Source: Dimorphilus gyrociliatus
Taxonomy: Eukaryota > Animalia > Annelida
Direction of reading: 5' to 3'
Length of the DNA stretch: 64,000 bases
NCBI GenBank assembly: GCA_904063045.1
Contig: CAJFCJ010000019.1
Location: forward strand, 1,813,700-1,877,699
Shown: one piece after another, positions 1,288 to 64,000 of the stretch
How the letters are laid out: each line of letters begins with the position of its first letter
How positions within the stretch are numbered: the stretch's first letter is position 1
The notes under the pieces: model-generated
What the model saw: the letters and a program-made list of their open reading frames with translations, nothing else
Database searches by the model: none
What the model was told of the DNA's origin: nothing
Position numbers and translations under genes: made by a program

Positions 1288-1586
1288 TTTAGGCCTAAAA
1301 CTCTATTTGTTAAATATTTTGTATTTAAAAAATGACGGTTAATATTAATTTTAAATAAAAACATAAAAAAGGTAAGAGAGCCTAAGCACAGCAAAAAAAC
1401 GAATGATCTATAATTTTCCATCAGAAATTAGTTAATAAATTAATAAAGTAAAATAACCTATTAAAAAACGTTAGATATTTTTGATTGTTTAAAAGCGTCG
1501 ATTTGAACCTAAAACACAAAAAAGACCTAAAAAAAAACAGAAAAACAATACAATAAAGGAAAAAGAAGAAAGAATCACTAAAAAGC

Positions 1587-3460: not shown

Positions 3461-3719
3461 TATAATCATTTATTGAACTTATTAATAATATACGAGAATT
3501 TGACACGATTACTTGTTCTCACGTATTGAAGGTTTATAAGATAAAAAAAATCTGACACATTTTTTCAATTCTGTTTTAATCATATGAAAGTCATATGCCT
3601 GAATTTACTATACTGCACTTCTGACAGTTAACTAAAGAAATACTTAATTCTCATAAACAATAACCTACAAGGAATAAACATTACAACAATATTCAAAAAT
3701 AAGTCTAGTAATTTCTTCT

Positions 3720-6290
<2,571 letters not shown>

Positions 6291-39056: not shown

Positions 39057-39223
39057 TATCTTTGTATATTTTAAAATACAATCTTGAAGCGTAAATTATT
39101 GTTCTGTTTTCTATGATTACTATGACTACCATGTATGAATTATATAACCAGCAATGGTTATAATACAATAGCAAATAGATACTATTGAATGTTGGAATTT
39201 TGCTGAGGTTGAAGGACTGTAAA

Positions 39224-44038: not shown

Positions 44039-45254
44039 ATAGTGAACTATCAAAAAATGGTAATTTATATATATTTTAACAATATGATGGGATGTTTACT
44101 TTATTCAATACTCGTCTTCTTTCTGGAGCTCGTTATTTTGTTTTGATTTCAAGTGAGTCGTGTTTATTTAGTGACGGATGATGTTTATTCGAAAAAAGAA
44201 ACAACAACATTCTGTTACTAAAATTCGTAAAGAAAATCTACAAAAATATTCAACACAAACGTTATGAATTCTAATTAACCCACTAGTATTATTGTTTGTC
44301 TTGGTTTATCGTAAACAGAAGATATTCAAAACCAAATACAAAGCGTTTATTCATTCTTTGTCGAATTTATAGATTTCTTCATCATTGACAAACTCGTATT
44401 CTTACCATTTTTCAACATCCATTTTGAAATTCAGTATGATACCTTCATCGCAATTCTCACCAGCTCAATACGTTCGTTCTTCCAAGCAATATACAAATTC
44501 CACTTATGATAAAGACTACTATTCATCTTTTCAACAACTTCGTTTATAATCTCGTCGCTGTTTAATTTGTCCGCTTCGTTGCCGACAATAAAGAAACTTT
44601 CCACTTTCAACAAGTTCGTCTTTAAATGGAATAGTGAAAGAGTATCGATATATTTAATAGGTTCCATATCTCTTAAAACATTTCTAGAATGCTGAACATA
44701 GCGAGGTTTCGACCCGAATCTTTTTCTCAAGATGTCTAATGCATAAAAATAGCCATCTTCGCCCAAAATATAACAATATTTTATGGAATCGTAAGCCAGA
44801 CCTTTGCAGTGTCTGCATAGATGACGTAACTTTTCGCTGTTAGTCAACCCTTTGTTATCGACATCCAACTTGTGTTTTACCAAAAACTTCTCAACGCGTT
44901 CAGCATCATGACAATCATCGTCAAGTTCGTAGCTATTCTCGTCTTCTAGGTCGTTTCCAATGCCGTTAAACTTTTCAATAGACTCGTTACTGCAGGACGA
45001 ACATTCAGAGCTCTGACTTGACAATTTCTTTTTCGAAGTGGATGGTGAATTCTTCATAATCACCATTATCTTATCAAGTTTATCGCCCAATCCGTCCATT
45101 TTTCTATCCAAGTTGGTATAAACCTCTTCAAGTTTCCTTTCCGCTTGAATTGAATAATCTCTAGCTCGTTTGATAGTATCTTGGCTTACATATGAACATG
45201 CTCCATTGCTTGTAGAATACAACTTGGTGTAATCATTATTATCATCAAAGATCT
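42926..45254. repeat. Segmental duplication copy 1 (PARP 3' exons plus gag), paralogous to 53363-55900
   Basis: Near-identical sequence from tcggtatcaaacag onward, including introns and intergenic DNA; differs by a 72-bp insertion, a ~205-bp deletion and indels after the PARP stop. Confidence 0.95.
44431..45254 (-). pseudogene. Truncated copy of the BEL/Pao-type gag ORF
   Basis: Central ~590 bp identical to 55232-55829; lacks the N-terminal ~100 codons; a ~205-bp frameshifting deletion removes both zinc knuckles. Confidence 0.8.
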
Positions 45255-45994
45255 GTTTATTACTGCTAGAAAATCATCAATTTTGCTGAGAGCTATAATT
45301 TTTATGGCTTTAGAAAATTTGTTTATCAGGCCATTTTTTAAGCCTACGAGAGAGGACAGCGTAGGAATTTTCTAAAAATTCTATTTACTTTTTCTTTTTT
45401 AGCCCTACAAACTTATAGTGAATCATTTAAATCTGCTACAAATGAACCATGTATTTTTGTTTTGTACCTCATTCTGCTTCAATAATTTGATATTAAATGA
45501 TTGTACACTGCGAAACGTCTAAAGAGGACAAAAGCTATAAGTAATATTTTTCCGTACGTAATTAGATTTAGAGTTTTAAACACTTGTTTTGAAAAATTTT
45601 CTATCTAAAGGAAGTTCTAAGTTTAGATATTCATCAGATTTCGTAAGATTTCGACACATGAACGGCCAAAAAAATAGATATAAAAGTTAAAACCAACAAA
45701 TAGATAGCATCAAATGCAAGATAAACGTTCGTCAAAAGAAAAAATTGCTTCTTTAACAAAAACTGTAAGTGATGTATTATAATAAATATTTATGATGTAA
45801 TGAAATAATGTTCTACCACCTAGTTTAATAATTGGAAAAAAGGTAATCTATTTGAATAATAACAGTCTCTTAGCTCACTGTAATCCTTCCTGAAAGAAAT
45901 GCAAATTATTCATAAATAGCTCATTTGTATAATATAGTATATATACTGTAATATATATATATATTACATATATTCTTTATATACTTACTATTTA

Positions 45995-48274
45995 GGAAGA
46001 AATGCGTTATGTACGACACAAATTATTGCGAAAAGAATCAAGAAAATTTTCCAATGGGCTCCTTTGATAGAAGAAAATTCACTCAAAACAAATTAGAAGA
46101 AGGCCTAGTAAGTTTAATAAAAACATTTAGAAATACTGTATGTATTTTTGTATATACTATATTAATTTTTTTTAAAAAAACAAAATAATATTAAAATAGA
46201 ATTATGAAATTGATGATTCTGCCAAAAACGACAAGAAGAAAGTACAGCATGGTGCTGGTGGTAGTAAGTATATAGTTTTCTTTTATACTCTGAATATAAT
46301 GCGTATCGTATGTTTTATTTTATTTAGGAGTTTATAATTTTTTAAGATCAATTAAGGGAAAGATATTCCTAAATGAATTAATGAATGAATATGATTGTCA
46401 AATTAAGGAGAAAACCATTAATTTTAAAAAAACTATTAATATAAATGTAGTAATGGAAAGTATGAGTAAAATGAAAGAAAAGGTAAGAAGGTATTAACTT
46501 TTTAATCTGGATTAGTAATTGGAAAGACATTTCAGTGCGAAGCTTTAATATACTACGAGAAAATGAGTGAATCATTATGTATTCGTTATGAAAATTTTGA
46601 TAAATTTAAGAATGTTAAAAATCCCCAAATACTTCGATTCAATATATCGAAACGACAGAATAAACAGGTAGAAAAATTGATTCAGTATATGAAGGCCTAT
46701 GTAGATTATGAATCATTTTTTGCCAGTGTTTAAATGAAGTTTTAAAAAAGATTTTAAAATGGTGCCATAGTAACAGTATAGAAAGTATTGGAATATCTCA
46801 AATGGGCTGTGAACAATGTTTTGGCCTTAGATCTGATCGACTTGCTCATATATTTTATCAGGAAATCACCAACTTTAATTTCTACGTAAAGAGTACATCA
46901 ATACACGTAAAAATTGATATATGAATATTTCAAATTGATAAATATTTAGCCTATTCCGTTCATTCAGGAAATTTTTATCGTCTGCAATACTGGAGATTAT
47001 GCGAAATACAATAAACTTAGAGAAATTGACAGGAGATGTACAATTTTTACTATTACGGCTAAAAGTCAAGAAAGAGTTGATAATGTAGTAAACGAATTAA
47101 AGCAATTGAGAGAGTCAACTATCATAGAAGAAATGATTATTCCTGAATATTGTGAATTAGATTCACTTGAAGAATTTGAAAATGAGAATACGAGAGTTAA
47201 GATTATGGGATTTAAATCGAAAAGGAAGATCGTTTTGGTAGGAATGGGAGATGAGGCTAAAAAAACTTGGCAGTTATTGACTCTATTCATTCAAAATACT
47301 CTAAAGGATTTAAGATCAAGTTTTACTCATAAAAGCCTAACTTCCGTTTCTAATCTTCAAGATAGATTGAGCGTTTGTGTTATGCTAGCTTAATTATAAT
47401 TATTTCTTAATACTTTCCTTGCTCTATATTTCCTGATTAGATCAGACTGGAATTAAACGAAAGGGTACCGCATAATTGGACAAAGTTTAAAGGAAATCTT
47501 AAAGATATTTTCAGTATAGAACCATACATCGTTGATCTATATGAAAAAGATAAGAGACAATTCGAGTAAGCAACTGTTTTTGAATATAAAATATTAATCA
47601 TATCACAATTAGTTAACTGGTAGTCTTTCTCTTGATCAAACAGCGAAATAAAGAACTTTTTCTTAAAAGCATGGAAATATAGCGATGGATTAAATAGTAA
47701 AATTCATATCTTAAGTATTAAAATGAATGAAAATCCCTGTTTATTTGAAAGGTATGCTTTAAAACATAAACAAATAATCAAAAGTTTAGCCAACAATACT
47801 AGCAAAATAATAAATAGCCATAGCACTGCACTTGATGAATACTTAACTATTGATATGGAATCGCATTTAACTCAAGAATTAAATGAGCATTATCTCTTTC
47901 ATGGAACCTCCGAAATTTCGGCTAAATATATACTTCACCAGGGATTTGATTATAGATTAGCAAATAGGGGAAATTTTGGTAAAGGAATTTATTTTGCTGA
48001 AAATCCAAAAAAATCGCATGCCTTTACTGAATGTTCAGAAAAAAAAACTATGTTAATATCAAGAGTATTATTAGGTAATAGTATATATTTGAAGACAAGT
48101 GAAAGAGATTTAGAGAGACCTCCTTGTGCAGTGTGTAAAGCAAGCTTATGCGAATATCATAATCAAATTTATGATAGTGTCATAGGATTATTTAAAGATA
48201 AAGAGATGGTAATTTATGACCCATTTCAATGTTATCCAGAATATTTACTCACCTATAAGATAGTCTGGATATGA
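45995..48274 (+). CDS. Macrodomain-PARP gene C (divergent macro, ART with H-Y-E); 5' end uncertain
   Basis: Macro C-terminal part SIESIGISQMGC at ~46760-46880; linker exon RVPHNWTKF; ART FHGT, GKGIYFAENPKKS, KEMVIY..CYPEYLLTY. Confidence 0.75.
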
Positions 48275-48859
48275 GTTGAAACGATAAAACAGTAAGAAAC
48301 AAAGTATTTGTCTTTCGAAGATAATCCTAGTCTTTTTAATAAAATATTAGATATTTGTATATATGAAGAGATAACTTTGTTTTATATTTTCTTATTAAAA
48401 CCGTACTTTCTGTTTTTGTTTATCAATGTCTTTTTCTTGAATAAACAATAAGCATAAAGACTAATTATTTTATAATTTCTTTCGTTGAAACAAAATGCAT
48501 GTCATTAGCAAGTATCAAAAATTAAAAGCACGTTGCTAGGTAAAATAACTTCAATCCAGCCCCATAAATTCAATTTTTGCAATAATGAGAGTATAGAGCT
48601 ATGTTTATATTTTTTATTGTTCTATACTTATAGGGATTGACCTACTTTGGTTTTCCCCTATAAAATCTTTTTCAATCAGTCCGAATATCTTGAAAGGTGA
48701 TTTGTGGAATTATAATCAAAAGAGAAAGTACAAAGGAAGATTACATGATCAACAACTTCTTACTTTCAGTTTCATTTTGCTCATATCTAGTTATGCAGTC
48801 GTTAAAAGTTTAGCAAGACAAAATGGATATTATCATAGGAAAATTGTATAAGCCAAATG

Positions 48860-51800
48860 GGAATGTATATGATATAGATATTGAAGAGAAATTTGAACAA
48901 AATGAAAGATATTTTTCAGTAAAAAAGAAACATTATGGTAGGTTATTCATTGTATTCATTGATATTTCTTTTATAGATTTATATATAATATGTTAGGCTT
49001 ATGCGAATTTCTGAAAAGTCATACAATTGCTGAAAATATATTACAAGATATAGCAAACGATTTAAAATGTTGCCTTCGATTGAAATACGAAATTCATCCT
49101 CAAAGAATTGAATTCGAACTATCTCGCAAACGTATGGAAAATTTAATTTCCGAGGTAAGCACTAAGTATACGGTGTCAACAGATTGACATTTAACAACTG
49201 CCTCTGTACCCTAATATGAGTTTGCTTTATTATTTATAACAACAATAATTTAAAGAGTCTTATCATATTGGTCTATTTGAATAGCTTCATATATCCTAAA
49301 TAGATACCTTCCTAAGCTCTCTCCTATTATGTTCATCTACTAGTAATTTCCTTCAAATACGCAAATTCTTCACTTGAAATCTTTGTTTTCATCATAAATA
49401 GAATAAGATAGATTGCTACATAATTTATAACAAATGAAAATTCTATATAAATTTATATTTATGTTTGAAAAATAGGATTAAATTTTTGTCAGGTTGATGC
49501 GCTGATCTGCATTTATGATTGTTACATTCCGAAAAAGATTGATCTTAACTTTCCAACAATTTCAAGAAAAATAAGCACCTCCATAGAACAACAAGTATAT
49601 CAGAACAAAACTATGATATACTTTTTGGATATTAGAAATTTTACACATAGTAAAGGAAAACATCTATTTAAAACCAAACTGTTAGAAATTCTCAAGAAGA
49701 TTGCATTCAAATATACATCAGTACTATTTCCTATTATGAATAGGACTAGTTTTATAAATTATTACAAAATTGCTAATATAATTCAAGAGTGTTTAATAGT
49801 ATTGGAAAAGAACTATCGTAATTTAAAGATCAAGGTAATTACTTTAATATTTTAATGACGATTAATAGCAGTAATCTATAAATAATAGAAACTCATTGTT
49901 TGGTGCGAATCTGCAAAAGTTTACGAACATGTAAAAAGGATTAAGGAAAGAGATGTAGAAATAGAATGTACCGTTTTTCAAACCAAAAATTTACCAATTG
50001 CTAAAGAACGTTTAAACTATTTTATTGAATCGAGTTGTGTTAGCCTTATTTATCAATTCTTCTCTCTCATCGACATTCCACATTTATACTCTTTGAATAA
50101 TGAACTAGTAAGATTAGACTCCTGTAAGATATGATCCCTTTTTATCTGTATTCTGTTATCATTAAGCTATTTACTATGTTTGAATAGATGAGATAATTAA
50201 AAAAGATACAAATCCCAGCTTTCAAGGGTGTCATAGAGTTACTTATGAAATAAAAATCACTGGAATTTCTGGTGCTTCCTTTGCTGTATTAAAGACTCTC
50301 AAAGAAATGATTTATGGAAAATATGTAGCAGCTATAGAAAAAGTAAGCGAAAAATATATTTTCTTTACTTTTTTTTTTAAAAAGAAAGTATATTCTTTCA
50401 TTGTTGAAGGATGAAAAAAATCTATCTTCAAATAAATTCACCGATTTAGGATCTAAAATTCTATTACAAGAACTAGAAGAAGAGGATATAAATATTGTAT
50501 TTACTGTTAAACCAACTGCGGTTTATGTGTTAAAAACAGTTGTTTTACAATCGATTGTAAATAATTTGAAAACATCCAAATGTAAAATTGATATTACTGG
50601 GAATAACGTTACTCTTACTGGCAAAGCTGGCAGTGTTAGATTTATTAGGAATATTATCTTTGATAAAATTAGTAATGCTCATAGCATTCATTTGGATCTG
50701 TTTGAACATCATGAATCGGTTTATAAAGTATTAGAAGCAGCCATTCAAGCAAGCGATTATTCAAAAAACGTTTCGATTGATTTCAATAAGAGTTGTCTTA
50801 TAAGTCTAAGCAAAGAAACTCTTAGAGATTGTTACGATTTCCTGAAAAATTCGATTGAAATAGAACAATACGACTATAATCATAATTTAATCGATCAAAT
50901 TGAAAAGTTTAATAGTCAAAACCATGGCCAAAATCAAGTTGCTGTGACGGTAATTGGTAACAATCGGATAACTGTTACCGGATGTTTCGAGTCGCCATTC
51001 TGGAAATTGTTTAATTCTGCAACCATATCGTCAACCTTAAAGAACAGAAAGACAGATTTTTGTTTCGTAAAAGTATGAAATTCTTTATTATTGTTACTTT
51101 AAACAAATTTTCCCATTTGTAGAGTAAAAAGAAACAAACTAAAGAGATGTGGATTGAAATTAAAAGACTTTTCGAAAAAGCAGTTGCAAATTCGATAAAG
51201 GTTATATCTATAACAGAAATCAGCAAATCAGCATCAGTTTTCCATTTCAACACAAAAATAAGTTCAGGTAAGATGAATTGAATAAAATTCGTTAATGAAG
51301 ACTAATTTTACTTGTTTTGTATATTTTTATAGCCGACATTGAAACGTTAGATTCTATCAATAGTTCTTTGAATGTTGAATTCTATAGGCGAAAGCTAGAT
51401 AATTCTTCAGATACTTATGATAAAAAGAGAATGATATTTCTTTCACTTGTCGAAAATAGTAGACATCTACTAGCCGATACGCAATATCTCGATTATATAA
51501 GGAAAAGTAGCGACTGCGATATAAAATACTTTAACGAAGAGACTAAAGATGAACTATTGCTTATTGGTCAAATTGATACAGTCATTGGAGAAAGAGATGA
51601 AATATCAAGGAAGATTAACTTATATCAAAAATCCGATTTGTCGTTTAAATGTAACGATGAAGACTATAAAAAATTTATTAGAAAGATTTTAGCATCGGAG
51701 GAAAAAGACTGGACCGAGTTTGTAACTGTATTGCCAGGGAATCGTTTGATTGGTTGGGATAAATCCAATAATATCAAGCAACAAAATTCAGCTGAAGAAG

Positions 51801-54436
51801 CTAAAAGCTATTTTGAAGCATGTACAAAAATTGAAGAAATCCCCGATAACGAGGGTGATTTTAATACGATAATGGAATGGAATAAATCACAAAATTTGAA
51901 AGATAAACTCTTCTTTGAAAAATCCAATAGTAAATTTAGAATTTTAGGTTGGAATTCTTCAAAAGGGTGGAAAGATCATGAAAGTATCTTTATCGGTTAT
52001 CGAATTAAACCTTTGTGTTTTCGTATATCGAAGACGTTTTATAAACTTTTAAAGAATAAATTCCAAAACCAAATTAAGCAGTTCTTTAATAATATACAAC
52101 CTTTTTTTGATGACAAAACTTGTGAAATTAAAATTGACTGTTATCAAAAATTAAAGGAACCTTTTGTAAAGCTGTTGAATAAATGGGAAGCAAGTATGAA
52201 GAAACGTGTTTTGTCTCATCATCATTTCGGTTCGAGGACTATTTTTAATTATAAATAGCTTTTAAGATATTTTTTATTATCAATTTTCTAGGTCTATTAA
52301 GTCATTTGCAAACGAAAGAAGGTGAAGAACATGTAAACTCAATAGAAAAGACATGGAATTCTTCTATCAACTTCGAAGTTGATGATGAATCATCAAACTT
52401 GAACATTATATTCGTTGAGAATGAAATTACATCAATGAATGATAAAGTAAGCATTTAATATCATATTCTTAAATTACAATAATGATGTTTTTCTACTAGA
52501 CTATACAGTGTGACGCTCTGGTAAATAATATAGCCGTAATGACCGACGATTTATCACAGGGAGGTTCAATTTCAAAGGCATTTTTGAAAAAATTTCCAAG
52601 AATTGCAACACTGGAAATGAAATCATATCGAAATATAAAAATTACGGAATTAGAGCAATTTAAAATAATACATACAAGAGTGCAACACCATAATGATATC
52701 ACTAAAGAAAAGGTAAGTATCCCTTTTTCCCTAGCCAGATATTTTGTTAATTTAAATAATTTGGTTTTTCTTATCTAAAGGATCTTATCTCGTCTTTGCA
52801 AAATGTACTTTCTTACGCTATTGAAAATAAATTAACCAGTATAGCACTTCCGCCAATAGGATGCGGCTATAGTCAGTATGATCCAAGGATTGTAGCTCAT
52901 TATATGTATCATAGTATAACAGATTTAAAGTATAAGTACACAGATATATCGCTAAAGGTATTTATTAATTATTCTCAATTCTAACAAATTGATATACAAT
53001 ATATATTTCTTCAAATAGAAAGTTTTTATAGTATGCCTGAGTGGAGCTGGTCACGTTTTGACAGAACCATTTAAAGCTATTGAGGAGAGATCAATAAAAG
53101 TATGTATATATGCCGAAAAGGATGAGAATATTGAACGTACAACAAAAGCTATACAATCCTATATTAAAGAGCAAGCAATTGTGAAAAAGATTAATCTAGA
53201 AAAGAACATTAGATTGAATTCTGTGGAGAATTTAGAGAATAAATATGTAAAAATTAAACAGCTAAGAATGAGTATATATAAATACTTGTATACTTTATAG
53301 TATTTTCTATGTTAATTTATATCTATTTTCAGTTAAAACTAATGAACAATTCATGGAAATTGTCGGTATCAAACAGTTTGTTGATAGAAGTTTTGATTTA
53401 ACTAAAGAGCTTTTAGAAAATGCTAAAGAAAAACCAATTACTTGGAAGGATTTCGATGAAGAAACCGATCCAGAAGAGAGACTTGAGGTAAACAAATTTA
53501 TCAGGCGAATTTGCTCTTATAAAGTATTAATGTAATAATATTTAGATGAGAATTAAACTTTTCAATAATTATCCAAAAAATTGGACAAAATATTCTGGTA
53601 AAATAAATTCAAGTAAACCGAAACATAGACTTGATTTAAAAAAACATGATCTTAATACATACAAGTAGGTCATACAGTTTCATTTTGTAAATTAACTATA
53701 ATTAACAATTCTTTTCTATTAAAGTCTAATTGAAAAGTTTATGAAAGATACTTGGAGAGATAATGAGAATGCTGTAGCATCTTCCGATGATATAGAAATC
53801 TTGGGGATTGAACGGTCAGAGAATCCTAGATTATATCAAGCTTATTCCACTGAACATAAGAAATTTTGCGAGAGTTTGAGCTCTGATAAATTTCCTATGT
53901 TGAGCACCAAAACTAGTAAACATTGTCCAGTTGAATTGTCATCTCTTCTAGCGCCCGAAATCAATGAATTTTACTTTTTCCATGGAACGAATTCTGCATC
54001 TAAAGATAAGATTCTCCACCAGGGATTTGATTTTCGACTTGGTGAAGTAGGTTACTATGGTAAGGGTGCATATTTTGCTGAAGATCCCAAGAAATCTGAT
54101 GGTTATACCTTCGGCCGTGGTAAGACTATACAAGAGAAATATGATATAAAAAGACATATCATCATAGGAAGAGTAATACTTGGAAATTCAACTGTCGTCT
54201 CTCGAGATTCGAACCTCAAACGACCTCCCTGTAAAACCTGCAAGGCAAATGTATGTAAGGACCATAATGAATATTTCGATTCTGTTCGTGGAAATGGAGG
54301 CCTTGAAAATATTTTTTGGGAATACATTGTTTACAGTCTAACACAATGTTATCCCGAATATCTTGTAACTTACAAGCTGAAACAGAAAGAGAATTCTTCA
54401 GGCACGAAAATTGAAAGGAAAAATAGTTTACCATAA
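48860..54436 (+). CDS. Macrodomain-PARP gene D (long PARP14-like: degenerate macro, KH-like repeats, macro, ART with H-Y-E); 5' end uncertain
   Basis: Macro CDALVNNIA..GGSIS and IALPPIGCG at ~52500-52950; linker exon YPKNWTKY; ART FHGT, GKGAYFAEDPKKSDGY, WEYIVY. Confidence 0.8.
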
Positions 54437-55900
54437 ATTTATAGTGATCTATCAAGAAGCGGTAGATTCTTTATCAAAAGAGACCTATTATACTTAGGTA
54501 TCTATATGTATTTTAACAATATGATGGGATGTTTACTTTATTCAATACTCGTCTTCTTTCTGGAGCTCGTTATTTTGTTTTGATTTCAAGTGAGTCGTGT
54601 TTATTTAGTGACGGATGATGTTTATTCGAAAAAAGAAACAACAACATTCTGTTACTAAAATTCGTAAAGAAAATCTACAAAAATATTCAACACAAACGTT
54701 ATGAATTCTAATTAACCCACTAGTATTATTGTTTGTCTTGGTTTATCGTAAACAAACAGAAGATATTCAAAACCAAATACAAAGCGTTTATTCATTCTTT
54801 GTCGAATTTATAGATTTCTTCATCATTGACAAACTCGTATTCTTGCCATTTTTCAACATCCATTTTGAAATTCGGTATGATACCTTTATCGCAATTCTCA
54901 CCGGCGTGTCCTTGTTCGTAGCATATATTGCACGTTTGGTGAGTTTGTATGAAATTATTCTGCTTAGTTGGGCTCAATCGTCTAAATTTCGTACAAGTAT
55001 TGATTTCATGCTCCTCGGACATGCAAAATATACAATGAACTTGCGATCGTTCCTTAAGATTCTTCAATTCGTAGTTAAGAAATTCAATTAGAGACTTGAA
55101 AACAACCCGCTCGTTACGTTCGTTCTTCCAAGCAATATACAAATTCCACTTATGATAAAGACTACTATTCATCTTTTCAATCACTTCATTTATAATCTCG
55201 TCGCTGTTTAATTTGTCCGCTTCGTTGCCGGCAATAAAGAAACTTTCCACTTTCAACAAGTTCGTCTTTAAATGGAATAGTGAAAGAGTATCGATATATT
55301 TAATAGGTTCCATATCTCTTAAAACATTTCTAGAATGCTGAACATAGCGAGGTTTCGACCCGAATCTTTTTCTCAAGATGTCTAATGCATAAAAATAGCC
55401 ATCTTCGCCCAAAATATAACAATATTTTATGGAATCGTAAGCCAGACCTTTGCAGTGTCTGCATAGATGACGTAACTTTTCGCTGTTAGTCAACCCTTTG
55501 TTATCGACATCCAACTTGTGTTTTACCAAAAACTTCTCAACGCGTTCAGCATCATGACAATCATCGTCAAGTTCGTAGCTATTCTCGTCTTCTAGGTCGT
55601 TTCCAATGCCGTTAAACTTTTCAATAGACTCGTTACTGCAGGACGAACATTCAGAGCTCTGACTTGACAATTTCTTTTTCGAAGTGGATGGTGAATTCTT
55701 CATAATCACCATTATCTTATCAAGTTTATCGCCCAATCCGTCCATTTTTCTATCCAAGTTGGTATAAACCTCTTCAAGTTTCCTTTCCGCTTGAATTGAA
55801 TAATCTCTAGCTCGTTTGATAGTATCTTGACTAACATATGAACATGCTCCATTGCTTGTAGAATACAACTTGGTATAATCAATATTATCATCGAAGATCT
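53363..55900. repeat. Segmental duplication copy 2, paralogous to 42926-45254
   Basis: Direct sequence comparison. Confidence 0.95.
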
Positions 55901-56198
55901 CTTCATCATTACTAGAAAAACTTTCATCGAGCAAATATTCAGGATAGTCATCAATTTTTTTGGAATTAGGACTTTTAGCGGTCAACTGCACTTCTCCCAA
56001 ATCTGCCAAATCGTTAAGTTCAATTTCACTGGACATTTTCTTGACCTTATCAATTTCTTCCAGTAAAACTTCTTCCTTAATCACGTCCAATCCGTTTAGA
56101 TTACGCGTACGAAATGCTCCGTCGATAGAAGCCACTGCTTCTTGAATTGCGTCTCTCTTTCTCGCTAAATCTTTAAAATCTAAACTTTTCTTAGACAT
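54792..56198 (-). mobile_element. Stand-alone BEL/Pao-type retrotransposon gag-like ORF (intact, ~468 aa from ATG 56198), no pol or LTR seen
   Basis: DUF1759-like segment EKLRHLCRHCKGLAYDSI...ALDILRKRFG and two CX2CX4HX4C knuckles (CIFCMSEEHEINTC, CNICYEQGHAGENC); stop without downstream protease/RT. Confidence 0.75.
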
Positions 56199-56757
56199 GT
56201 TCTCGGAGTCTTTCAACGTTAACGGGATTGTGTTCTGTCTAGACAGTTGAACTTTATATTCAAATCTGAGAGTGTGGCTACTATATATATCTTTACTGAG
56301 TACTAATCAACTTTTTATTACATATTAAACAATTTTTAAGAAATACCAGTTTTCTGGAAATATATAGTTATATATTAGGAAAAAGTATCCTCATGGCAAA
56401 CAATTGTCATAAAAAAAATTATGTAGCATATGACAACTGGAGAAAAAATTTGAAACGTTTCATTTGCATAAAAGTAATTTTCTAAGCGCCATTTTGATTT
56501 GAATTTTTGGAAGCAATTCTTCTTATCCAGTGATGCTTTATATATATCTAGATTCTAAATTTTCTTAAAAGCCAACCAGATTTGTCATTCAAGTTGTTTA
56601 TAAAGTATTTCAACAAAAATGTAAAAATTTTTAAAAAGTCGCGATATTGTGTTCACTAGAAGTTCTTTTTTTTTAAAATAAAACTATATCTCTACAATTT
56701 TATCACAGCAAACTATATTTTATGATTAAAGCATGAAACAAACAATGACAAACTTTA

Positions 56758-57405
56758 CTAAATGTTATAACTTTTTAATTTTTTAAAAGTTTTAAATCCA
56801 ATATTTAATATGGTTTTGAAATCCCTTAGGAATTTAACAATAAATACATTCTTTCCTTCACTTCTCAGGCTTCTCATCATTTTTTTCTTTGATACATGTA
56901 TATGAGTAGTATGATAATAATGTTTTTCAAGAGGAATTTGATAGATGAATCTGCATGTACCGTAAATCTTGTTAATCTGCAGCTTATCACTATTTATTAT
57001 AGATCTTCCATCGTGTGTTCGAAAGATATCTTCAAGCTTTCCAATATCTAAATAATTGTTCATTGTTTCTAAAAGTTCCAACAAAGCTAAGCGATCTTTT
57101 GGATTTCCTAAACTTCCTATTGTTTGATGACATAAGTTTCTATTTTTAGTAAAATGAAGATTACAATCATGAGATTTTAAGTCAATAGCTTTAAACAAGA
57201 CGGATATGTAGAAATTAGAAGTTAAGTCTTCAATAATGTTTTTACTTAATTCTCTGAATCTCTTGAAGTTACTTCTTCTCTCGGGAAAAGACATTTCGTA
57301 AGTAGAATCATCGTGTAGGATAGTCCTCTCACACTTCTTGAACTGAATTGAAAAACTAGTTTGAGAGTAGCTGAAAAAGTATAAAAGTAGTATCTTGAAC
57401 AACAT
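56758..57405 (-). CDS. Intronless secreted orphan protein, paralog 1 (215 aa)
   Basis: Signal peptide MLFKILLLYFFSYSQT; four Cys and motifs shared with 58201-58851. Confidence 0.8.
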   Translation of the reverse strand: MLFKILLLYFFSYSQTSFSIQFKKCERTILHDDSTYEMSFPERRSNFKRFRELSKNIIEDLTSNFYISVLFKAIDLKSHDCNLHFTKNRNLCHQTIGSLGNPKDRLALLELLETMNNYLDIGKLEDIFRTHDGRSIINSDKLQINKIYGTCRFIYQIPLEKHYYHTTHIHVSKKKMMRSLRSEGKNVFIVKFLRDFKTILNIGFKTFKKLKSYNI

Positions 57406-58200
57406 CTCGGAAATAATTATTATAATTAAAATTTGCGCCCCTTTTTAAGCGTTTTTTTTTATTAACCATAATTTTATGAGTTTCTAGAAAGGATTTTACT
57501 TATATAATATTGATTGTCTGACAATGTAAGCTTTAGAAGTATAGAAATAGAGACAAGGTAAATTCCACTGGTTTCATCGATTTATTATGTGACGCTTTTT
57601 CCTGAGCTATTTATGTATGAATTGAAAGATTCATGTATACTACAGATTGATTTTTTCTTTTAAAACATTTTTCTACGTAATCTTACTATAAGACAAATTT
57701 AAGTTTATTTTTTATGAAAAGGAACTTGTGTACTCTAATTAAGCAATGTACAACAGTCATTTTTCCTCTATTTCATAGTGGAAAGCTTTGGCATTGGGAA
57801 AAATTATGAATTATCATTTTTCTATTGTCTCTGAAAATTGAATGTATATAACAAATGTTTTTGTTAGGTTGAGGAAGATCCATCTATATATTAGGTAATT
57901 AATAGGAAATTTTAAGCAGTTTCTACCTCTAGATCAAGATATTAATTATGAAAGATACTGGAAACCACGATGAATAATAGTGCAGTATTACAGTTATTGA
58001 ACAATTTGTGTTATGAAGAAGCTTGTATTCGTCATATTCTAATCGCGTTTATTACATAATGACTTACGACTTTGAAGTAACAGTTTATCGCTATAAATAA
58101 ATATCAGATATATTAATAGAGAAATATTTTTTATCGTTTGTTTTTATTAAAAACAATAAATAGTAAAATCAAATATGAAACAAAAAGTTAACTCGTTTAT

Positions 58201-58851
58201 TTACAGTTGACTCAGACTTCTCATTAATTTATTTCCCTTTTTTAGTAAAGTGATTATATCTTCAAAAAATTGTAATAAAAACTGCTGTTTTCCTTCATGC
58301 TTTAGAGTTTCTCTAATTCTTTTTCTGGATACATATACCTTATTATAACCCAAGTATTTCTTCTCCACTGGAATATATGTAAAGAATTGACATAGACCGT
58401 AAACCTTATTGAACAGTATATCTGTCTTATTAATAAGACGTTTTATTAGTGGTCGAAAGAGAGATGAGTGAGCTGCAATATCTAAAAAATTCTGCAATGT
58501 TTGAAAGAATTCAAACATAATATGACGATTTTTTTGAATTTTCAAGTTAATAATTTTAAAAGGGCAAAGTTTCTTGGAGTTTTTAGCAAAATGAAGCTTA
58601 CATTTCCGATGTTTAATAGTTTTCAAACCAGTTCTGTAAAGTAATGTACCATAGGCAGTGGAAGTCATTTCAGTATATATCATATTCTCCATCATTCTAT
58701 ACGTATAGTAATACTTAATTTTCTCAGCCAAATTTACCGTAAATCTAGTATTGGAAGTGAATATAGTTTTAGGACAATGTGATTTCTTAATTAAATGAAA
58801 ACTTCGACATCGAATAAAGCCAATAAATAATATCCATATAAAGTACCACAT
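58201..58851 (-). CDS. Intronless secreted orphan protein, paralog 2 (216 aa)
   Basis: Signal peptide MWYFIWILFIGFIRC; shares C.LHF.KN..LC, NK.YG.C.F..IP.EK.Y, VS.K, EGK..F...F..D with paralog 1. Confidence 0.8.
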   Translation of the reverse strand: MWYFIWILFIGFIRCRSFHLIKKSHCPKTIFTSNTRFTVNLAEKIKYYYTYRMMENMIYTEMTSTAYGTLLYRTGLKTIKHRKCKLHFAKNSKKLCPFKIINLKIQKNRHIMFEFFQTLQNFLDIAAHSSLFRPLIKRLINKTDILFNKVYGLCQFFTYIPVEKKYLGYNKVYVSRKRIRETLKHEGKQQFLLQFFEDIITLLKKGNKLMRSLSQL

Positions 58852-59315
58852 CTACTTAGATTGGTGTATGAGCTATCCAGCTGCTCAAGGTAAGCTTTAT
58901 ATACCCATGTCTTACGGAAATTTACTGTTAATTGGACAATAATCTTAGCAAGGAATCTAAAAATAGCTTCAGCTAATCGAGCCCATTAATACTTGGACAC
59001 AATTGTATGTTTAGTTAAGAGAGATTATTCAGTTAGCTACAATATCGAAAATTTTAAAATAACTATTAATGAAGCAGTAGTACGTATATAATACAGTCGA
59101 TCCCATTGATTGAATTTTCTTCACATTATGCAGAATCAGGAAATTATCTGTTTGCGTAATATATGATTTATATTAACCCAATTCTTAAATAGCCCTATAC
59201 ATTCTAAAAATTAAATTTTCTCCTACAGTATGAATTGAAGAATAAAAAAATTGAATTTTATTGATTCAAACTTGAGATGAAGAACTGGAAAACCATTAGA
59301 AATTGTCACTTACAG

Positions 59316-59317
<2 letters not shown>

Positions 59318-59346
<29 letters not shown>
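59318..59346. repeat. (TA)n microsatellite
   Basis: Seen directly. Confidence 0.9.
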
Positions 59347-59351
<5 letters not shown>

Positions 59352-60365
59352 ATTTACTAATATAAAGTCTGAAGGTGACGGTAATATTAATCAAAACAAT
59401 AAACACTACTTCCGTAAGTGTAACTTGAACGGAGATAACAACTATTTTATAATTGAGCAATAGCTAAATATTATCTTGCAATATGAAATAATTGATATAT
59501 CGATCAATCGACTTGCGGTAAGGTCAAGGATAGCTTAGGAGAAATAGTATTTGGAAGCTATGATTATTGTCAATGAAATATAGTACTAAATCTGATATAC
59601 AAATAATCTTATTCATAATATATAAATATGAAAATATTATTATAGGGCTATAGCCTAATAACGCTGAGTTTTCATAATAATTACAAGTAAGCAAGTTTGC
59701 AAGATAGGCCTGTTTGAAAAGTATTTTTTAATAAAACAAAATCATAGCTAGGTAAGGAAAATTTCTACCTTAACAATAAGTTGCTTAAAACGGGCTTACC
59801 GCAGTGAATTTATGTCTTTTGACTATTCGAGTATTGAAAATAAAAATTTTTGCATACTAAACAATAAACTTAATAGGAAATTAGACGAGTTAATTAATTA
59901 AGAGAAAATAGGCTGAAAAATTGCTTTAAATATAGTTTATATGAAAGAAATTTTTATGATTTACATATTTACTGGAAAAAAGAGCTACTGACGAATTTAC
60001 AATAAATCTGAATTATTTAACTACTACTTTTTTTTATTAATACTTTAAATAAGGAAATCTAGGTCAAAACCCTCCTATTATCTAATGTAAATAGCAACTA
60101 TCATTTAGAATATTTAATTAGTGTCTGTTTTTTATCATCATGAAAGATACAACAGTAGTTCTAAAGTAAGGTCAGTACTCTGTAAGAGTACCTAAGTATC
60201 TTATTATCAATTTATACAACGACATTTCGCAGTCTATATGGACAAGTTAAAGAAATAAAGGTAAATTACTATGTTTCTAGGTAGATTTAACATGTATTCT
60301 CCTAAGTTATTTCATTACTTATTTGCACAATTTATCTTCAATATCATTGGTTTTTATTTAATAGG

Positions 60366-63300
60366 ATGCAAGCCAAAGAAAAACTATCATTTTTCTATTA
60401 TACAAGAGACTTATGGAGGATTTTCAAGGACACAAACACATTTGAACATTTATGCTTAATACTCCTTTCGTCGGGATCTTTAAACGATGCCAGAAGGGAG
60501 GAACTAGTACATCAGCATAGGAAATCTTGCTCTCAAGGAATTGCTATTGAATCACTGATTAATCTTTTAAATAATCAATCTCTATACTATACAGTAGATT
60601 CGCTTAATCGACTGAATGAACATCAATCATTAAGAATTTCAAAAAACTTGAGTAATGTAGACGGCGTTTGGAAAAAGGTAATAGAGGATGTAAAAAATGA
60701 GAGAAAGAAAGACTCATCTCATATACCTCCTCTTCCATTTGGCAATAGTAGGCATGTTAGGTTATCGGATATTGTAACATCTATCGAAGTATCCGAAGTC
60801 GTTAACTCAGATCTGCTCGATACAAATTTGGAATCAACAAACATCGAATACAATAACTTTCATAAGATATTTGAGAAGCCGTTTAACAAAATTCTTGTAC
60901 AAGGTGAACCTGGAATGGGTAAAAGTGTTCAGGTTAGAAATCTCATTCATCTGTGGTCTTTTGACCAATGGCAGACCAGCAAAAATAAATTAGTCATTGT
61001 TATTATTTTAAGAGATGTATTATCGGACGATGACATTTTCGAAACTATAATGAAGCAAAATTTTAAAACAGTCTCATCTATAAGTAAAGATATCATTAGA
61101 CTACTCTTTGAAGAAAAAAGTCAAGAAGTCTTACTGTTTGTGGACGGCGCTGATGAATTCCATTTGAATGACCATCCACTAAATCATATAATAGATAAAC
61201 CAAATTGTCCAGTACCTACTGTAATATGGACTAGAAAATGGAAGGCAAAAGATATCCGAACGACATGTGACATAACTTTTGAGCTTACAGGATTAAATGA
61301 TGAACAGCTGATATCTTTCTTCTCAAAATGTTTTTACGATGATCCTTTCGCAACGATTTTCCTTAATAGTCTTAACGGAAAAAACAAAAGTGTTAGGAAT
61401 CTTTGTAGAGTTCCACTATTAGCGATGATTGTATTTTATGTTTGGAAGGAAAAAGGAGATTTCTTTAGCAAAACCCTATATGAAATCTATGAAAATCTAG
61501 TGAAAATAGTCCAAGAGAAAACGGAAGTGAGAAGATCTAATCTAAAAGATAGAATGAAGGTAATACATAAAATATGCTTTACCAATCTGGCAAAGAGTAA
61601 GATATTACTTTCAACGAACTCTAGTGAAGAGAGAGATATAAAAGAATGTATTAGCGGTCTAGTTCAAATAATACCTCAGAGACATGCAAATTCTGGATTA
61701 ACTGAAATTCAATTCCATCATTTATCAATTCAAGAGTTTTTTGCAGCAAAATATCTTATTGATGAATATCAAAGAGTATTTAGCATAAATCTTTTATTCA
61801 AACCTCTAGACGAACAATTAAATAAACTTAACAATACAAATATCTACAATGTTATGGAGTTTATTAAGCAATGCTCTACAAAGATTTTTAATAAAATACT
61901 ATTAAACTCAAGGAAAATTCAAGCAATGTATAAATGTAGCGATAAACTAAAAGGCTTACTGGAGCAAGGATTGGGCAATGAAAAAACTTTATTATTTGAA
62001 AATGAAAAAGTAAATGACCTAGTTCTATCAATCTTATTTGAGAAAATTGGGATTAATATTGAGGAAGTGACTCTGCAGAAAACTGAAATAGATATAGCGT
62101 TGTTATTGAAAACATTGTCTTCGAGTAGTCCCAATCTTAAGAATATTTATATTAAAGATAGAACTTTGTTAACTTGTTTGTATAAAGATGGCATTCTCTT
62201 AGATAGTTTATTAACTCTACTTAGATTGACCAAACTCTCAAATTTCCATATGGGAAAGACGTGTTTTCAAATAATTAGACACTGCAACAAATCTTCTACA
62301 TCCGCAAAACGAAAGGTGAAAGATTTAGAAATTTCCCATTCTCGCAATAATGGAATAATTATTATTCGAGCTACTTTTGGTTCAGTCTATATGGCAAGCC
62401 TTACTGATAATTGCTCCAATTTTTCATCTTATATAAACTGGGACGTCATTAAGTTTATAAAAAAATGTCCTTATATGAAAACATTAACGTTTAAGAATAA
62501 AATTCTCAGAGAACGCTTTTGTCCTCAATTGTTTGAAGTTCTACAAAATAAAATAAAAATGGAGGTTTTAAGAACAGTTTGTCTAGTAAATACTATAATA
62601 GAGACGCCAAATGAGGAATTTCTGAGCAATTGTTATAGGTATCTTAGACCACCGAAGTATGAGATGAATGAACAGAAACGCAATAAAGAATCTTCTCAAT
62701 TGAATAGTTTTGATGTAACAGTTATGAGGAATGATGAGCTACTATTTGTATTAAATATAGATCAGGATTGCCGGAAAGGTATAAATATTCCTACATGGAA
62801 ATACAATAAGGTGGAGAATATGAGTCATGTTGTAAATGGATGGAGGAGAGATATGATAAAAATGAGAAATTTCAATTTGAAATCATATACAAAGATAAAG
62901 AATATTTCATTTAGTTTGGACGATGATCTCGTATGTTCATTGTTTCAGGATATTCAATCGCTTAACCTAGCTGACTGTTTCATTAATGAGAAAACTGTTC
63001 AATCTCATATATTAGAAAAACTTCCAAAGATTTCAAACTTAATATCTTTAGATCTAAGCACACTGAATTGGTCTCATAGTCTAACAAAACTCATTGTTCA
63101 AGTCTTAAGTAATTCCCCATTTCTTACATCCCTTAAATTAAACGACTGTGGACTAATAGAACGTAAAGCCACACTCTTGGGAGAAAGCTTGGTTCATTGT
63201 TCAAACTTAGAATTACTATCTCTTCAATATAACAATGAGATGAACTGCGGATTAGAGAAAATATTTAAAGGGCTAGAAAATCACACAGACCGTATGAAGC

Positions 63301-64000
63301 ATCTTAATCTAGGAGCTTGTGACTTATCTAGGGATCTAACATCTTTATTAGGTGAATTTATGCAAAAGTGTTGCAATTGTGAATCAATATCCATCGAAGG
63401 AAATCAAACTACAGGAAGTGGATTTCATGATTTATGTAATGGATTAATATATTGCAAGAATATAAAAAGCCTTAATTTCAGTAAATGCTCTCTAAACAAT
63501 GCGCAAGCAATAAGCTTGGGAAAATGCTTAAAAAATCTATCTAATATTGAGAATTTATGTCTTTCCGAAAATAAAAACATGGAATCGGGATTTGGTGATA
63601 TTTGTAATGGTTTAGAAACATCGTCAAATTGTCTAAAACATCTTAATCTCGACTGGTGTAATTTGAGCAGCACTAAAGCCGAAAAATTAGGAAAGAGTTT
63701 AGAGCACTGCTGCTTCTTGGAAACCTTATCTCTTCGTGAAAGCGAAAATATGGGTGATGGATTTACTGAAATTTGTCTTGGGTTGACCAAATCTTCTGAA
63801 TGTCTTAAGAGTATCGATTTAAGTTGGTGTAATTTAAGTGAAAATCAGGCAAAGAAATTAGCTAAATGTTTACAAAAATGCTCACGTTTTGAATCGCTAT
63901 TGGCTGAGGGGAATTCCAAAATGGATTTACAACTTTATGCCGTATTCTCTAGTTTAAAAACATCTTCTGAATCTTTTAAATATCTAAATCTCAACTGGTG
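60366..64000 (+). CDS. NLR (putative death-fold, NACHT, RI-like LRR), partial; no stop inside the window so absent from the ORF track
   Basis: One frame read open from ATG 60366 wherever checked: Walker A GEPGMGKS (~60903), Walker B LLFVDGADE, sensor IWTR, CRVPLL, WH FHHLSIQEFFAAKYL, alternating 28/29-aa LRRs (HLNLDWCNL). Confidence 0.92.
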   Translation, partial: MQAKEKLSFFYYTRDLWRIFKDTNTFEHLCLILLSSGSLNDARREELVHQHRKSCSQGIAIESLINLLNNQSLYYTVDSLNRLNEHQSLRISKNLSNVDGVWKKVIEDVKNERKKDSSHIPPLPFGNSRHVRLSDIVTSIEVSEVVNSDLLDTNLESTNIEYNNFHKIFEKPFNKILVQGEPGMGKSVQVRNLIHLWSFDQWQTSKNKLVIVIILRDVLSDDDIFETIMKQNFKTVSSISKDIIRLLFEEKSQEVLLFVDGADEFHLNDHPLNHIIDKPNCPVPTVIWTRKWKAKDIRTTCDITFELTGLNDEQLISFFSKCFYDDPFATIFLNSLNGKNKSVRNLCRVPLLAMIVFYVWKEKGDFFSKTLYEIYENLVKIVQEKTEVRRSNLKDRMKVIHKICFTNLAKSKILLSTNSSEERDIKECISGLVQIIPQRHANSGLTEIQFHHLSIQEFFAAKYLIDEYQRVFSINLLFKPLDEQLNKLNNTNIYNVMEFIKQCSTKIFNKILLNSRKIQAMYKCSDKLKGLLEQGLGNEKTLLFENEKVNDLVLSILFEKIGINIEEVTLQKTEIDIALLLKTLSSSSPNLKNIYIKDRTLLTCLYKDGILLDSLLTLLRLTKLSNFHMGKTCFQIIRHCNKSSTSAKRKVKDLEISHSRNNGIIIIRATFGSVYMASLTDNCSNFSSYINWDVIKFIKKCPYMKTLTFKNKILRERFCPQLFEVLQNKIKMEVLRTVCLVNTIIETPNEEFLSNCYRYLRPPKYEMNEQKRNKESSQLNSFDVTVMRNDELLFVLNIDQDCRKGINIPTWKYNKVENMSHVVNGWRRDMIKMRNFNLKSYTKIKNISFSLDDDLVCSLFQDIQSLNLADCFINEKTVQSHILEKLPKISNLISLDLSTLNWSHSLTKLIVQVLSNSPFLTSLKLNDCGLIERKATLLGESLVHCSNLELLSLQYNNEMNCGLEKIFKGLENHTDRMKHLNLGACDLSRDLTSLLGEFMQKCCNCESISIEGNQTTGSGFHDLCNGLIYCKNIKSLNFSKCSLNNAQAISLGKCLKNLSNIENLCLSENKNMESGFGDICNGLETSSNCLKHLNLDWCNLSSTKAEKLGKSLEHCCFLETLSLRESENMGDGFTEICLGLTKSSECLKSIDLSWCNLSENQAKKLAKCLQKCSRFESLLAEGNSKMDLQLYAVFSSLKTSSESFKYLNLNW

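Follow-up and report, generated by a model that had tools for sequence, protein, structure and literature searches.

Helical cytokines are central to vertebrate immunity and endocrinology; elsewhere, beyond the Unpaired (Upd) proteins of insects, their ligands are essentially unknown. IL-6 and G-CSF have small disulfide loops, and the vertebrate genes of the IL-6 family contain introns. Type I interferons are known from vertebrates only; they belong to the class II cytokines and adopt a five-helix arrangement. IL-11 (strongly) and IFN-beta are basic, and human IL-26 is a cationic helical cytokine that is directly bactericidal. Upd proteins are secreted, basic, predicted to be helical and not seen by sequence outside their lineage; they are glycosylated and about twice as long as the proteins described below. 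Secreted immune ligands in general often evolve fast.

Upd1-3 are the only well-established invertebrate ligands of the class I-type receptor/JAK/STAT axis (PMC13203501). JAK and STAT are reported back to Porifera and IL6R-like receptors from Mollusca onward only, in sponges and molluscs without known ligands, and the IL-6 family itself has been detected in vertebrates only (PMC13203501). By structure-guided searches, IL-1 cytokines have recently been traced far back among invertebrates (PMC13736523); the literature yielded nothing of this kind for four-helix cytokines.

The locus compared here with these systems lies in a window of 64 kb, which is the whole stretch of DNA that was analysed. 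Two tandem genes, A and B, are located on its minus strand between a retrotransposon-like ORF and an NLR gene, as follows:

54792 to 56216, minus strand: retrotransposon Gag-like ORF, between the PARP cluster and gene A.
56758 to 57405, minus strand: gene A, a single-exon CDS of 215 aa with the stop codon within the coordinates (ORF; paralogy to B).
57352 to 57405, minus strand: predicted signal peptide of A, about residues 1-18, cleavage site approximate (hydrophobic N-terminus).
57406 to 58200, minus strand: spacer of 795 bp from B to A, which includes the presumed promoter of A, with a TATA-like box at -101 (motif scan).
58201 to 58851, minus strand: gene B, a single-exon CDS of 216 aa with the stop codon within the coordinates (ORF; paralogy to A).
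58795 to 58851, minus strand: predicted signal peptide of B, about residues 1-19, cleavage site approximate (hydrophobic N-terminus).
58852 to 60365: divergent intergenic region of 1.5 kb, from the start of B (minus) to the start of the NLR (plus).
60366 to 63998, plus strand: NACHT-LRR NLR, single-exon, at least 1211 aa, running off the window end (stop-free ORF).

A and B are real, intact genes; their coding regions consist of a single exon each and evolve under purifying selection. The initial annotation had described two tandem single-exon genes of 215/216 aa, and intact ORFs of these lengths lie on the minus strand exactly where it placed them. It had also assigned them signal peptides, four aligned Cys and a basic composition, which hydropathy, alignment and isoelectric points of 9.68 (A) and 10.14 (B) bear out, and the segments it quoted, LLELLETMNNYLDI / MFEFFQTLQNFLDI and FIVKFLRDFKTIL / FLLQFFEDIITLL, are present in the A/B translations. 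The two proteins are paralogues with 32% identity over 189 aa (E 5e-32), and its description of a diverged pair of the same length is correct at 215 versus 216 aa. Mature A has about 197 aa, 23.5 kDa, a pI of 9.7 and four Cys, and mature B has about 197 aa, 23.7 kDa, a pI of 10.1 and four conserved Cys. The aligned Cys are residues 25/81/92/151 in A and 26/84/96/154 in B, and the fifth Cys of B falls within its signal peptide. The four Cys most likely form two stabilising disulfide bonds.

The signal peptides were called by a hydropathy heuristic. The N-terminal hydrophobic stretch comprises 10-13 residues in both proteins, with a mean Kyte-Doolittle value of 1.2-1.8 (residues 2-15: 1.18 in A and 1.76 in B), and that of A is too short for a membrane anchor. 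Downstream of the N-terminus, hydropathy revealed no membrane-spanning hydrophobic segment in A or B. At this composition, about 8e-5 stop-free runs of at least 215 codons are expected by chance per 64 kb; this figure, together with two further intact homologues in another genome, excludes chance ORFs. A and B each align with the other three members of their family from the signal peptide to the C-terminus, and the term intronless therefore holds for the coding regions, while introns in the 5'-UTRs of both genes are possible. The HMM scores are E 2e-93 for A and E 1.9e-98 for B, and an HMM scan that covered every stop-free segment in the window and in the related contig described below found no further or degraded copies. 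Gene B also has a TATA-like box at -52 and an AATAAA overlapping its stop codon, and an (AT)15 microsatellite lies at 59318-59347, between B and the NLR.

Among 1.84 billion protein representatives, a profile search picked up one relative, which led to an 8.2-kb contig (L001) from a more AT-rich genome. This contig carries an NLR, 43% identical to the window NLR over its full length, followed by two family members, C and D, of 219 and 223 aa. With A and B, this brings the known family to four members from two diverged genomes, arranged as two tandem pairs, each of which adjoins the same kind of NLR. The members are 215-223 aa long, share four invariant Cys, and have the N-terminal hydrophobic segment of 10-13 residues without any other membrane-type segment by the same heuristic. 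All four mature proteins are basic, with a pI of 9.2-10.1 and a net charge of about +9 to +27. The hydrophobic positions conserved in all four follow a helical i+3/i+4 spacing. Values of dN/dS range from 0.23 to 0.45, with 0.23 for C/D. Between species, the family is 22-24% identical versus 43% for its NLR neighbour; it evolves faster, which fits secreted immune ligands. A and B are best explained as belonging to a small family that evolves fast, is taxonomically restricted and has undergone a duplication in each lineage.

Neither A nor B had a match at E <=0.01 in word-index protein searches, and an exact look-up of A, B and the Gag-like ORF in a collection of 15 billion proteins found none of them. 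The four-member profile recovered C and D alone from the word-indexed protein set. Back-translated pattern scans with the family profile revealed no relatives in viral, prokaryotic-genome and metagenome collections, and neither did another scan of metagenomes for which the NLR pair served as bait. None of the four members matched a cytokine family in Pfam at E up to 10, and searches of PDB sequences with single sequences and with the profile gave chance-level matches only. The sub-threshold Pfam matches DUF3599, IpaB_EvcA, Peptidase_A17 and UL11 are unrelated, none is common to two members, and they were dismissed as noise. A and B are missing from public protein sets even though the source genome is annotated.

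The wider neighbourhood contains five ORFs with a PARP catalytic domain on the plus strand, from 38655 to 54436, and one ORF matches the PARP14-type KH domain weakly, under Pfam's cut-off. The window NLR matches Pfam NACHT (1.8e-12), the NLRC4 NACHT (E 2e-12) and ribonuclease-inhibitor LRRs (E 1e-15). The initial annotation gave this context rightly, as a position between PARP14-like genes and an NLR, and omitted the Gag-like ORF, which is 540 bp from gene A. For the multi-exon genes nearby (PARP, SOS-like, astacin/VWA), the scan covered individual ORFs. The adjoining NLR and the PARP14-like genes nearby suggest a function of A and B in host defence. However, the two genomes differ in how the pair is oriented towards the NLR, and the adjacency may thus be residual synteny and not functional coupling. 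Upstream of all four genes, NF-kB, STAT, ISRE/IRF, AP-1 and CRE motifs did not occur above the shuffled expectation. The window has no receptor with a cytokine-receptor homology module.

The genome context is AT-rich and compact, with an expanded-type single-exon NLR, and is not vertebrate-like. The window NLR resembles an expanded clade of sponge NLRs in that its RNI-type LRRs are barely detected by Pfam and it has no recognisable N-terminal domain; in the sponge clade, RNI-type LRRs are likewise poorly seen by Pfam and a recognisable N-terminal domain is absent (PMC3879445). Most arthropods lack a NACHT-LRR NLR, which is present here (PMC3879445).

AlphaFold2 with the alignment of the four mature members gave a model of D, and not of A or B, with a mean pLDDT of 73 (73.4) and a pTM of 0.78; four of its five models reached 70-73 and one only 56. 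The model of D has four long helices at residues 22-44, 85-104, 113-138 and 158-205, joined by loops of 40 aa (helices A-B), 8 aa (B-C) and 19 aa (C-D). Cytokine bundles with up-up-down-down connectivity typically show this pattern of a long A-B, a short B-C and an intermediate C-D loop. An independent low-confidence run on protein A placed the helices at matching positions. That run, based on a two-sequence alignment, was unusable as a structure (pLDDT 35), in Foldseek it matched helical proteins at random (TM <0.33), and it served only as a negative control for Foldseek. This control, an unfolded-looking model, drew no cytokines, and so a list of cytokine matches is not automatic for any helical model. 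A four-helix bundle with a cytokine-like loop pattern is predicted for the family at medium confidence.

No Foldseek match to the D model was significant, with E 0.6 or higher throughout. Among the matches with a meaningful TM-score, almost every one was a long-chain helical cytokine of class I or class II. IL-11 (4mhl) superposed with TM 0.52/0.62, an rmsd of 4.8 A and a probability of 0.77, at a non-significant E. Prolactin (1rw5) matched with a probability of 0.72 and TM 0.44/0.46, and 1f6f with a probability of 0.66; the TM-scores of the prolactin/GH/placental lactogen group were 0.44-0.48. IL-27p28 (TM 0.42/0.51) and IFN-beta (1au1, TM 0.43/0.51) were also matched, as were G-CSF, IL-6, leptin and GH. 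The alignments to IL-11, prolactin, IL-27p28, G-CSF and IL-6 run sequentially (E >=0.6, four-sequence alignment). In contrast, helical proteins that are not cytokines (SMC, BAR and de novo bundles) reached TM 0.12-0.26 only. In BFVD, the matches with TM >=0.3 were viral IL-10 homologues only, apart from one unnamed entry. The combination of AlphaFold and Foldseek, which had been proposed as a check, returned a predicted helical bundle and no match to an enzyme family.

Several explanations can account for a secreted, basic and helical family of this kind. A and B may be cationic antimicrobial or membrane-active effectors, whose basic amphipathic helices would bind to microbial membranes and make them leaky, or would bind nucleic acids; pathogen pressure would have diversified the family. 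The net charge of +9 to +27 fits such an effector equally well, and the fast divergence, the duplication within each lineage and the NLR and PARP neighbourhood are in keeping with it. The predicted signal peptides, the strongly cationic character and the helices with conserved hydrophobic faces are necessary for this role but not sufficient. Moreover, the size of ~24 kDa, the conserved hydrophobic core pattern and the four invariant Cys point to a stably folded globular bundle, unlike typical small peptides, and charge alone is not diagnostic because IL-11 and IFN-beta are basic too. The initial annotation had called a toxin or antimicrobial role equally possible; the uniformly basic charge keeps it live, but an antimicrobial function is rated here as rather unlikely and is placed below a cytokine-type ligand. 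In view of the IL-26 precedent, the two could both hold. The proteins may also be secreted helical bundles with some other extracellular role, such as a toxin or venom, gamete recognition of the abalone-lysin type, or carriage of lipids or other ligands. Abalone lysin is basic, helical and fast-evolving, secretion, basic charge, rapid divergence and taxonomic restriction are common to such classes, and four-helix bundles serve many functions. Nevertheless, none of these classes is found among the structural matches with real TM-scores, which are cytokines, and the conserved NLR adjacency does not suggest reproduction or venom; a role of this kind is accordingly considered unlikely.

The model itself can be questioned, as the cytokine-like fold may be an artefact of the four-sequence alignment, and the proteins would then be helical with a different or new tertiary fold. 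The Foldseek E of at least 0.6, the pLDDT of 35 and random matches of the two-sequence A model, and the single model at 56 are compatible with such an error. On the contrary, the pTM of 0.78, the four concordant models at 70-73 and the secondary-structure boundaries reproduced in two runs argue for the fold, the loop-length pattern and core spacing suit the topology, and IL-11 is matched with a TM-score above 0.5 by either normalisation, all of which make an artefact improbable. It is hardly credible that A and B are non-functional ORFs, decaying pseudogenes or retroelement cargo. Their absence from public protein sets, the Gag-like ORF close to A and a weak match of B to the Pao peptidase model (Peptidase_A17, E 0.09) could be read in that way, but the Pao match is far under the family cut-off and is not common to A, C or D. 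No LTRs and no terminal or direct repeats were found around the locus, there is no Gag on the related contig, and the idea of BEL/Pao transposon cargo was rejected because no LTR/TIR flanks the genes. In addition, four intact ORFs in two genomes have kept their length, Cys and core residues at a dN/dS of 0.23-0.45.

The preferred, though still tentative, explanation is that A and B are secreted, basic, long-chain four-alpha-helix bundles of ~24 kDa with class I cytokine connectivity, acting as extracellular ligands. After cleavage of its signal peptide, each protein would be secreted, and the bundle, as a ligand, would use its helix faces to engage a receptor on the cell surface. The tandem copies may represent diversified ligands, as in interferons or IL-6-family genes, and the NLR and PARP14-like neighbours would be in line with a function in host defence. 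For the putative helical cytokine family suggested in the initial annotation, the fold is supported at the level of a prediction by the four-helix model of D and by its best TM-scores, which are to cytokines. Against it, no Foldseek match to the predicted model is significant (best E 0.6) and only four sequences lie behind that model; the proteins have no sequence similarity to cytokines, and NF-kB, STAT and ISRE motifs are not enriched upstream.

A more far-reaching proposal, which we regard as doubtful, is that A and B are true helical cytokines from an animal outside the vertebrates, possibly an early-branching one. They would then be the missing ligands of an ancient JAK/STAT-type pathway, genetically linked to, and perhaps co-regulated with, an NLR sensor. 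If this is true, the helical-cytokine fold long predates vertebrates and is invisible to sequence searches. On the strength of the predicted fold, A and B are testable candidates for ancient signalling ligands. The locus offers a clonable candidate family: two species contribute four intact genes, the predicted model is cytokine-like at medium confidence, and the NLR neighbour is conserved. It makes the question of ancestral ligands experimentally tractable. The absence of the genes from the protein sets of an annotated genome also shows how such ligands get overlooked.

Compared with known systems, the prolactin/GH/placental lactogen group ranks first in Foldseek by E and probability, and its members are disulfide-stabilised bundles of 183-199 aa, a length near that of the family. 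In contrast, prolactin and GH have no sequence relation to the family, have a different disulfide pattern, and are multi-exon vertebrate endocrine hormones. Type I interferons share with the family an intronless CDS, tandem paralogues, secreted helical proteins of ~190 aa, four Cys, fast evolution and a location near immune genes. However, they are class II, five-helix vertebrate proteins without sequence similarity to A/B; none of the four members matches the type I interferon family PF00143 in Pfam, and ISRE/IRF motifs are not enriched upstream. IFN-beta is only one among many cytokines matched by the model of D. Intronless tandem pairs do occur in both genomes, but this feature is not specific to interferons, and the parallel drawn in the initial annotation stands as an analogy only. 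IL-26 resembles the family, as predicted by the model, in combining a helical cytokine fold with a very high positive charge, and differs from it as a class II vertebrate protein of the IL-10 family with no sequence link. Drosophila Unpaired (Upd1-3, the ligands of Domeless) gives a precedent for lineage-restricted helical cytokines, and protein searches found no similarity between Upd and the A/B family. IL-6, IL-11, G-CSF and IL-27p28 are secreted proteins of ~160-200 aa in mature form, with four long helices and the loop pattern that is predicted for the family, and the model of D superposes best on them. The IL-6 family differs in showing no sequence similarity (Pfam, PDB profile) and in having vertebrate genes with introns, whereas A and B are single-exon. 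Two Cys of the family, placed 11-12 residues apart in the predicted A-B loop, recall the small disulfide loops of IL-6 and G-CSF.

The two genes under study were recovered on the minus strand of the window exactly where the initial annotation had placed them:

56758-57405, minus strand, gene A, ORF of 215 aa
58201-58851, minus strand, gene B, ORF of 216 aa

Their translations contain the peptide segments quoted there, and their proposed paralogy is supported by BLASTP (32% identity over 189 residues, E 5e-32). Four cysteines are aligned at positions 25/81/92/151 of A and 26/84/96/154 of B, and the pI values are 9.68 and 10.14, respectively. Both N-termini have a short hydrophobic stretch predicted to be a cleavable signal peptide, and a hydrophobicity scan detected no later membrane-spanning segment. 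Each gene starts at the first ATG of its stop-free segment, and since only ~8e-5 stop-free runs of such length are expected by chance per whole window (28% GC and 8.4% stop codons locally), the two ORFs are not chance products. TATA-like boxes are located at -52 of gene B and at -101 of gene A, and the stop codon of B is overlapped by an AATAAA; such elements are weak evidence in AT-rich DNA. A motif scan of the upstream regions found no excess of NF-kB, STAT or ISRE motifs.

The genome is public and annotated, because a 211-aa neighbour ORF (2147-2782, plus strand) is present in NCBI/UniRef on a 3.79-Mb record. The exact sequences of A and B are absent from a collection of 15 billion proteins, and neither exact look-up nor HMMER profile search found them in public protein sets. 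Both genes appear to be unannotated and to have been missed by the genome annotation.

Neither A nor B retrieved a match in word-index protein searches. Since a lack of relatives is central to the claim, an A+B profile was run against all 1.84 billion protein representatives, and it gave one match, P0001 (E 2.4e-11). This protein is encoded on four genomic contigs that are 100% identical and come from four sequencing runs of one very AT-rich genome (24% GC). The longest of them, L001 (8.2 kb), has three genes on one strand, of which C and D belong to the family, the length of D being counted from its signal-peptide-bearing start:

1066-5106, plus strand, NACHT gene, 1346 aa
5785-6444, same strand as the NACHT gene, gene C, 219 aa, 678 bp downstream of the NACHT gene
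7405-8076, same strand as the NACHT gene and C, gene D, 223 aa, 960 bp beyond C

Three independent assemblies from different runs, L001 (8076-8218 after D), L002 and L004, stop at the same base, ~140 bp past D and just beyond a short run of AT dinucleotides; the sequence that follows directly is probably a repeat or one that breaks assembly. A four-member profile retrieved nothing further from the word-indexed protein set, PDB sequences or Pfam, and was blank in viral, prokaryotic and metagenome contigs, as was a metagenome scan baited with the NLR (NACHT-LRR) gene. Neither the window nor L001 contains extra or decayed family copies.

All four genes share their length, signal peptide, four cysteines and 22 invariant positions. 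BLASTP puts the identity of C and D at 55% (58% in the alignment), while A and B share 22-24% with them in the alignment. The C/D pair has a dN/dS of 0.23 and the A/B pair one of 0.45; synonymous sites are close to saturated. Judged from these comparisons, the family is real and under constraint. The evolutionary rate of the proteins is roughly double that of the NLR neighbour, which is 43% identical over its full length between the window and L001. Each copy resembles its partner in the same genome more than it resembles any copy of the other genome, and thus the tandem duplication is lineage-specific or the copies were homogenised by gene conversion. Adjacency to an NLR of the same kind is common to both loci. 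However, the pair in L001 lies downstream of the NLR and is co-oriented with it, whereas in the window it lies upstream and divergent; hence co-transcription is not a conserved feature. The linkage, compared in two genomes, could be functional or residual synteny.

AlphaFold2 with A as the query and a two-sequence alignment gave a pLDDT of 35. The second model, based on the mature regions of all four members with D as the query, has a mean pLDDT of 73.4 and a pTM of 0.78; of the five models, four are at 70-73. It consists of four long helices at 22-44, 85-104, 113-138 and 158-205 (mature D numbering), connected by A-B, B-C and C-D loops of 40, 8 and 19 residues. Two cysteines lie inside the A-B loop, 12 residues apart in D, and the others immediately ahead of helix A and within helix C. 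The helix boundaries agree with those of the pLDDT-35 model, and the hydrophobic positions that all four proteins conserve have a spacing of 3-4. Up-up-down-down cytokine bundles require a long A-B, a short B-C and an intermediate C-D loop, and the pattern predicted for D at medium confidence would fit such a bundle.

Foldseek found no significant match for the D model in the PDB (best E 0.6), but the ranking of the matches is nevertheless informative. All PDB matches with a probability of at least 0.2 are helical cytokines. IL-11 gave TM 0.52/0.62, an rmsd of 4.8 A over 185 columns and a probability of 0.77, with E not significant; prolactin gave a probability of 0.72 and IFN-beta TM 0.43/0.51. 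Placental lactogen, IL-27p28, IL-6, G-CSF, leptin, GH and IL-22 are also among these matches. Non-cytokine helical proteins (SMC, Smc5/6 arms, BAR domains and de novo bundles) gave TM 0.12-0.26 with an rmsd of 14-43 A. Among predicted viral structures, only viral IL-10 homologues and one unnamed entry gave a TM of at least 0.3. The pLDDT-35 model of A matched only random helical proteins, and the cytokine list is therefore not automatic for any helical model; the cytokine-like fold rests on the D model. The proposal of a helical cytokine family is tentatively supported as a likeness of predicted fold; no membership of any cytokine sequence family was found.

In the reading that we tentatively favour, the family is lineage-restricted and its members are secreted, probably stabilised by disulfides, share a cytokine-like long-chain four-helix fold and most likely act as extracellular ligands. 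The ligand role is one that we infer from the fold. The main rival, a direct cationic antimicrobial role, agrees with the strongly basic character of all four mature proteins and is less probable than ligand activity. IL-26 combines cytokine and antimicrobial roles, and both readings can coexist. Other extracellular roles are a little less plausible again, and a mispredicted fold is improbable. Non-function or transposon cargo is very hard to credit; neither LTRs nor terminal repeats were found around the pair.

What is new is the sequence family and its genomic association, the predicted fold being known. IL-6-family ligands are reported only from vertebrates and Upd from insects; IL6R-like receptors are reported from molluscs onward, and JAK and STAT back to Porifera (PMC13203501). 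CRLF3-type receptors date to early eumetazoans (PMC6797617). IL-1 cytokines were recently traced deep into invertebrates by structure-guided work (PMC13736523); no literature report extending four-helix cytokines likewise was found.

The window belongs to a compact, AT-rich animal genome (~30% GC), and nothing in it resembled human sequence. Multi-exon neighbours were examined one ORF at a time, by reference, and the coordinates are those of single ORFs with exons unjoined:

3324-3450, plus strand, U4atac snRNA gene (Rfam RF00618, 63.9 bits, E 1.7e-08, full-length match)
4648-5868, minus strand, eIF4A-like DEAD-box helicase ORF, 406 aa (DEAD 1.5e-53, Helicase_C 2.9e-19)
25099-28544, minus strand, adjoining astacin metalloprotease and triple-VWA ORFs, same strand
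32906-33691, plus strand, second astacin-CUB ORF, opposite to the first astacin
37651-38079, PARP14-type KH domain in one ORF, weak sub-threshold match
38655-39056, 42226-43098, 43304-44038, 47723-48274 and 53741-54436, plus strand, five PARP catalytic-domain ORFs
51317-52255, Death domain in the PARP region, weak match (E 0.016)
54792-56216, minus strand, intact Gag-like ORF, 474 aa, two CCHC zinc knuckles, weak DUF1759 (BEL/Pao Gag) similarity
60366 to the window end (63998), plus strand, NLR, one ORF right of B

The location of the pair between PARP genes and an NLR was correctly described in the initial annotation. The ORFs at 38655-54436 look like a tandem array of PARP14-like genes, and the two secreted astacin-type protease genes lie directly upstream of it. 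The Gag-like ORF lies between the PARP cluster and A; no protease, RT or integrase adjoins it and no LTRs were found, and it is a solo gag, possibly domesticated, or else what is left of an inserted retroelement. The window also carries an SOS-like gene with RhoGEF/PH/RasGEF. The eIF4A-like ORF, whose exact sequence is absent from the public protein collection, could represent a retrogene or a gene without introns. The U4atac gene implies that the source organism keeps the U12-type minor spliceosome.

The ORF at 60366-63998 is divergent from B across a 1.5-kb spacer. It matches Pfam NACHT and the NLRC4 NACHT (E 2e-12); the repeats at its C-terminus resemble ribonuclease inhibitor (E 1e-15). 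By these domain matches it is a genuine NLR. Both NLRs are single-exon; no domain, whether Death, CARD or another, was recognised in the ~170 residues N-terminal of NACHT, and a middle region of ~450 residues lacks family matches. Their RNI-type LRRs are seen via ribonuclease inhibitor structures, but Pfam LRR models hardly register them. Genuine NLRs with NACHT and LRRs reportedly do not occur in Hydra, Trichoplax, Mnemiopsis, Oikopleura and most arthropods, and the sponge Amphimedon has a vastly enlarged set (PMC3879445). At most a hint at the taxon comes from the large sponge AqNLR clade A, which has RNI-type LRRs overlooked by Pfam LRR models and often no N-terminal domain (PMC3879445), and which thus resembles the window and L001 NLRs in both the LRR type and the lack of a recognisable N-terminal domain.
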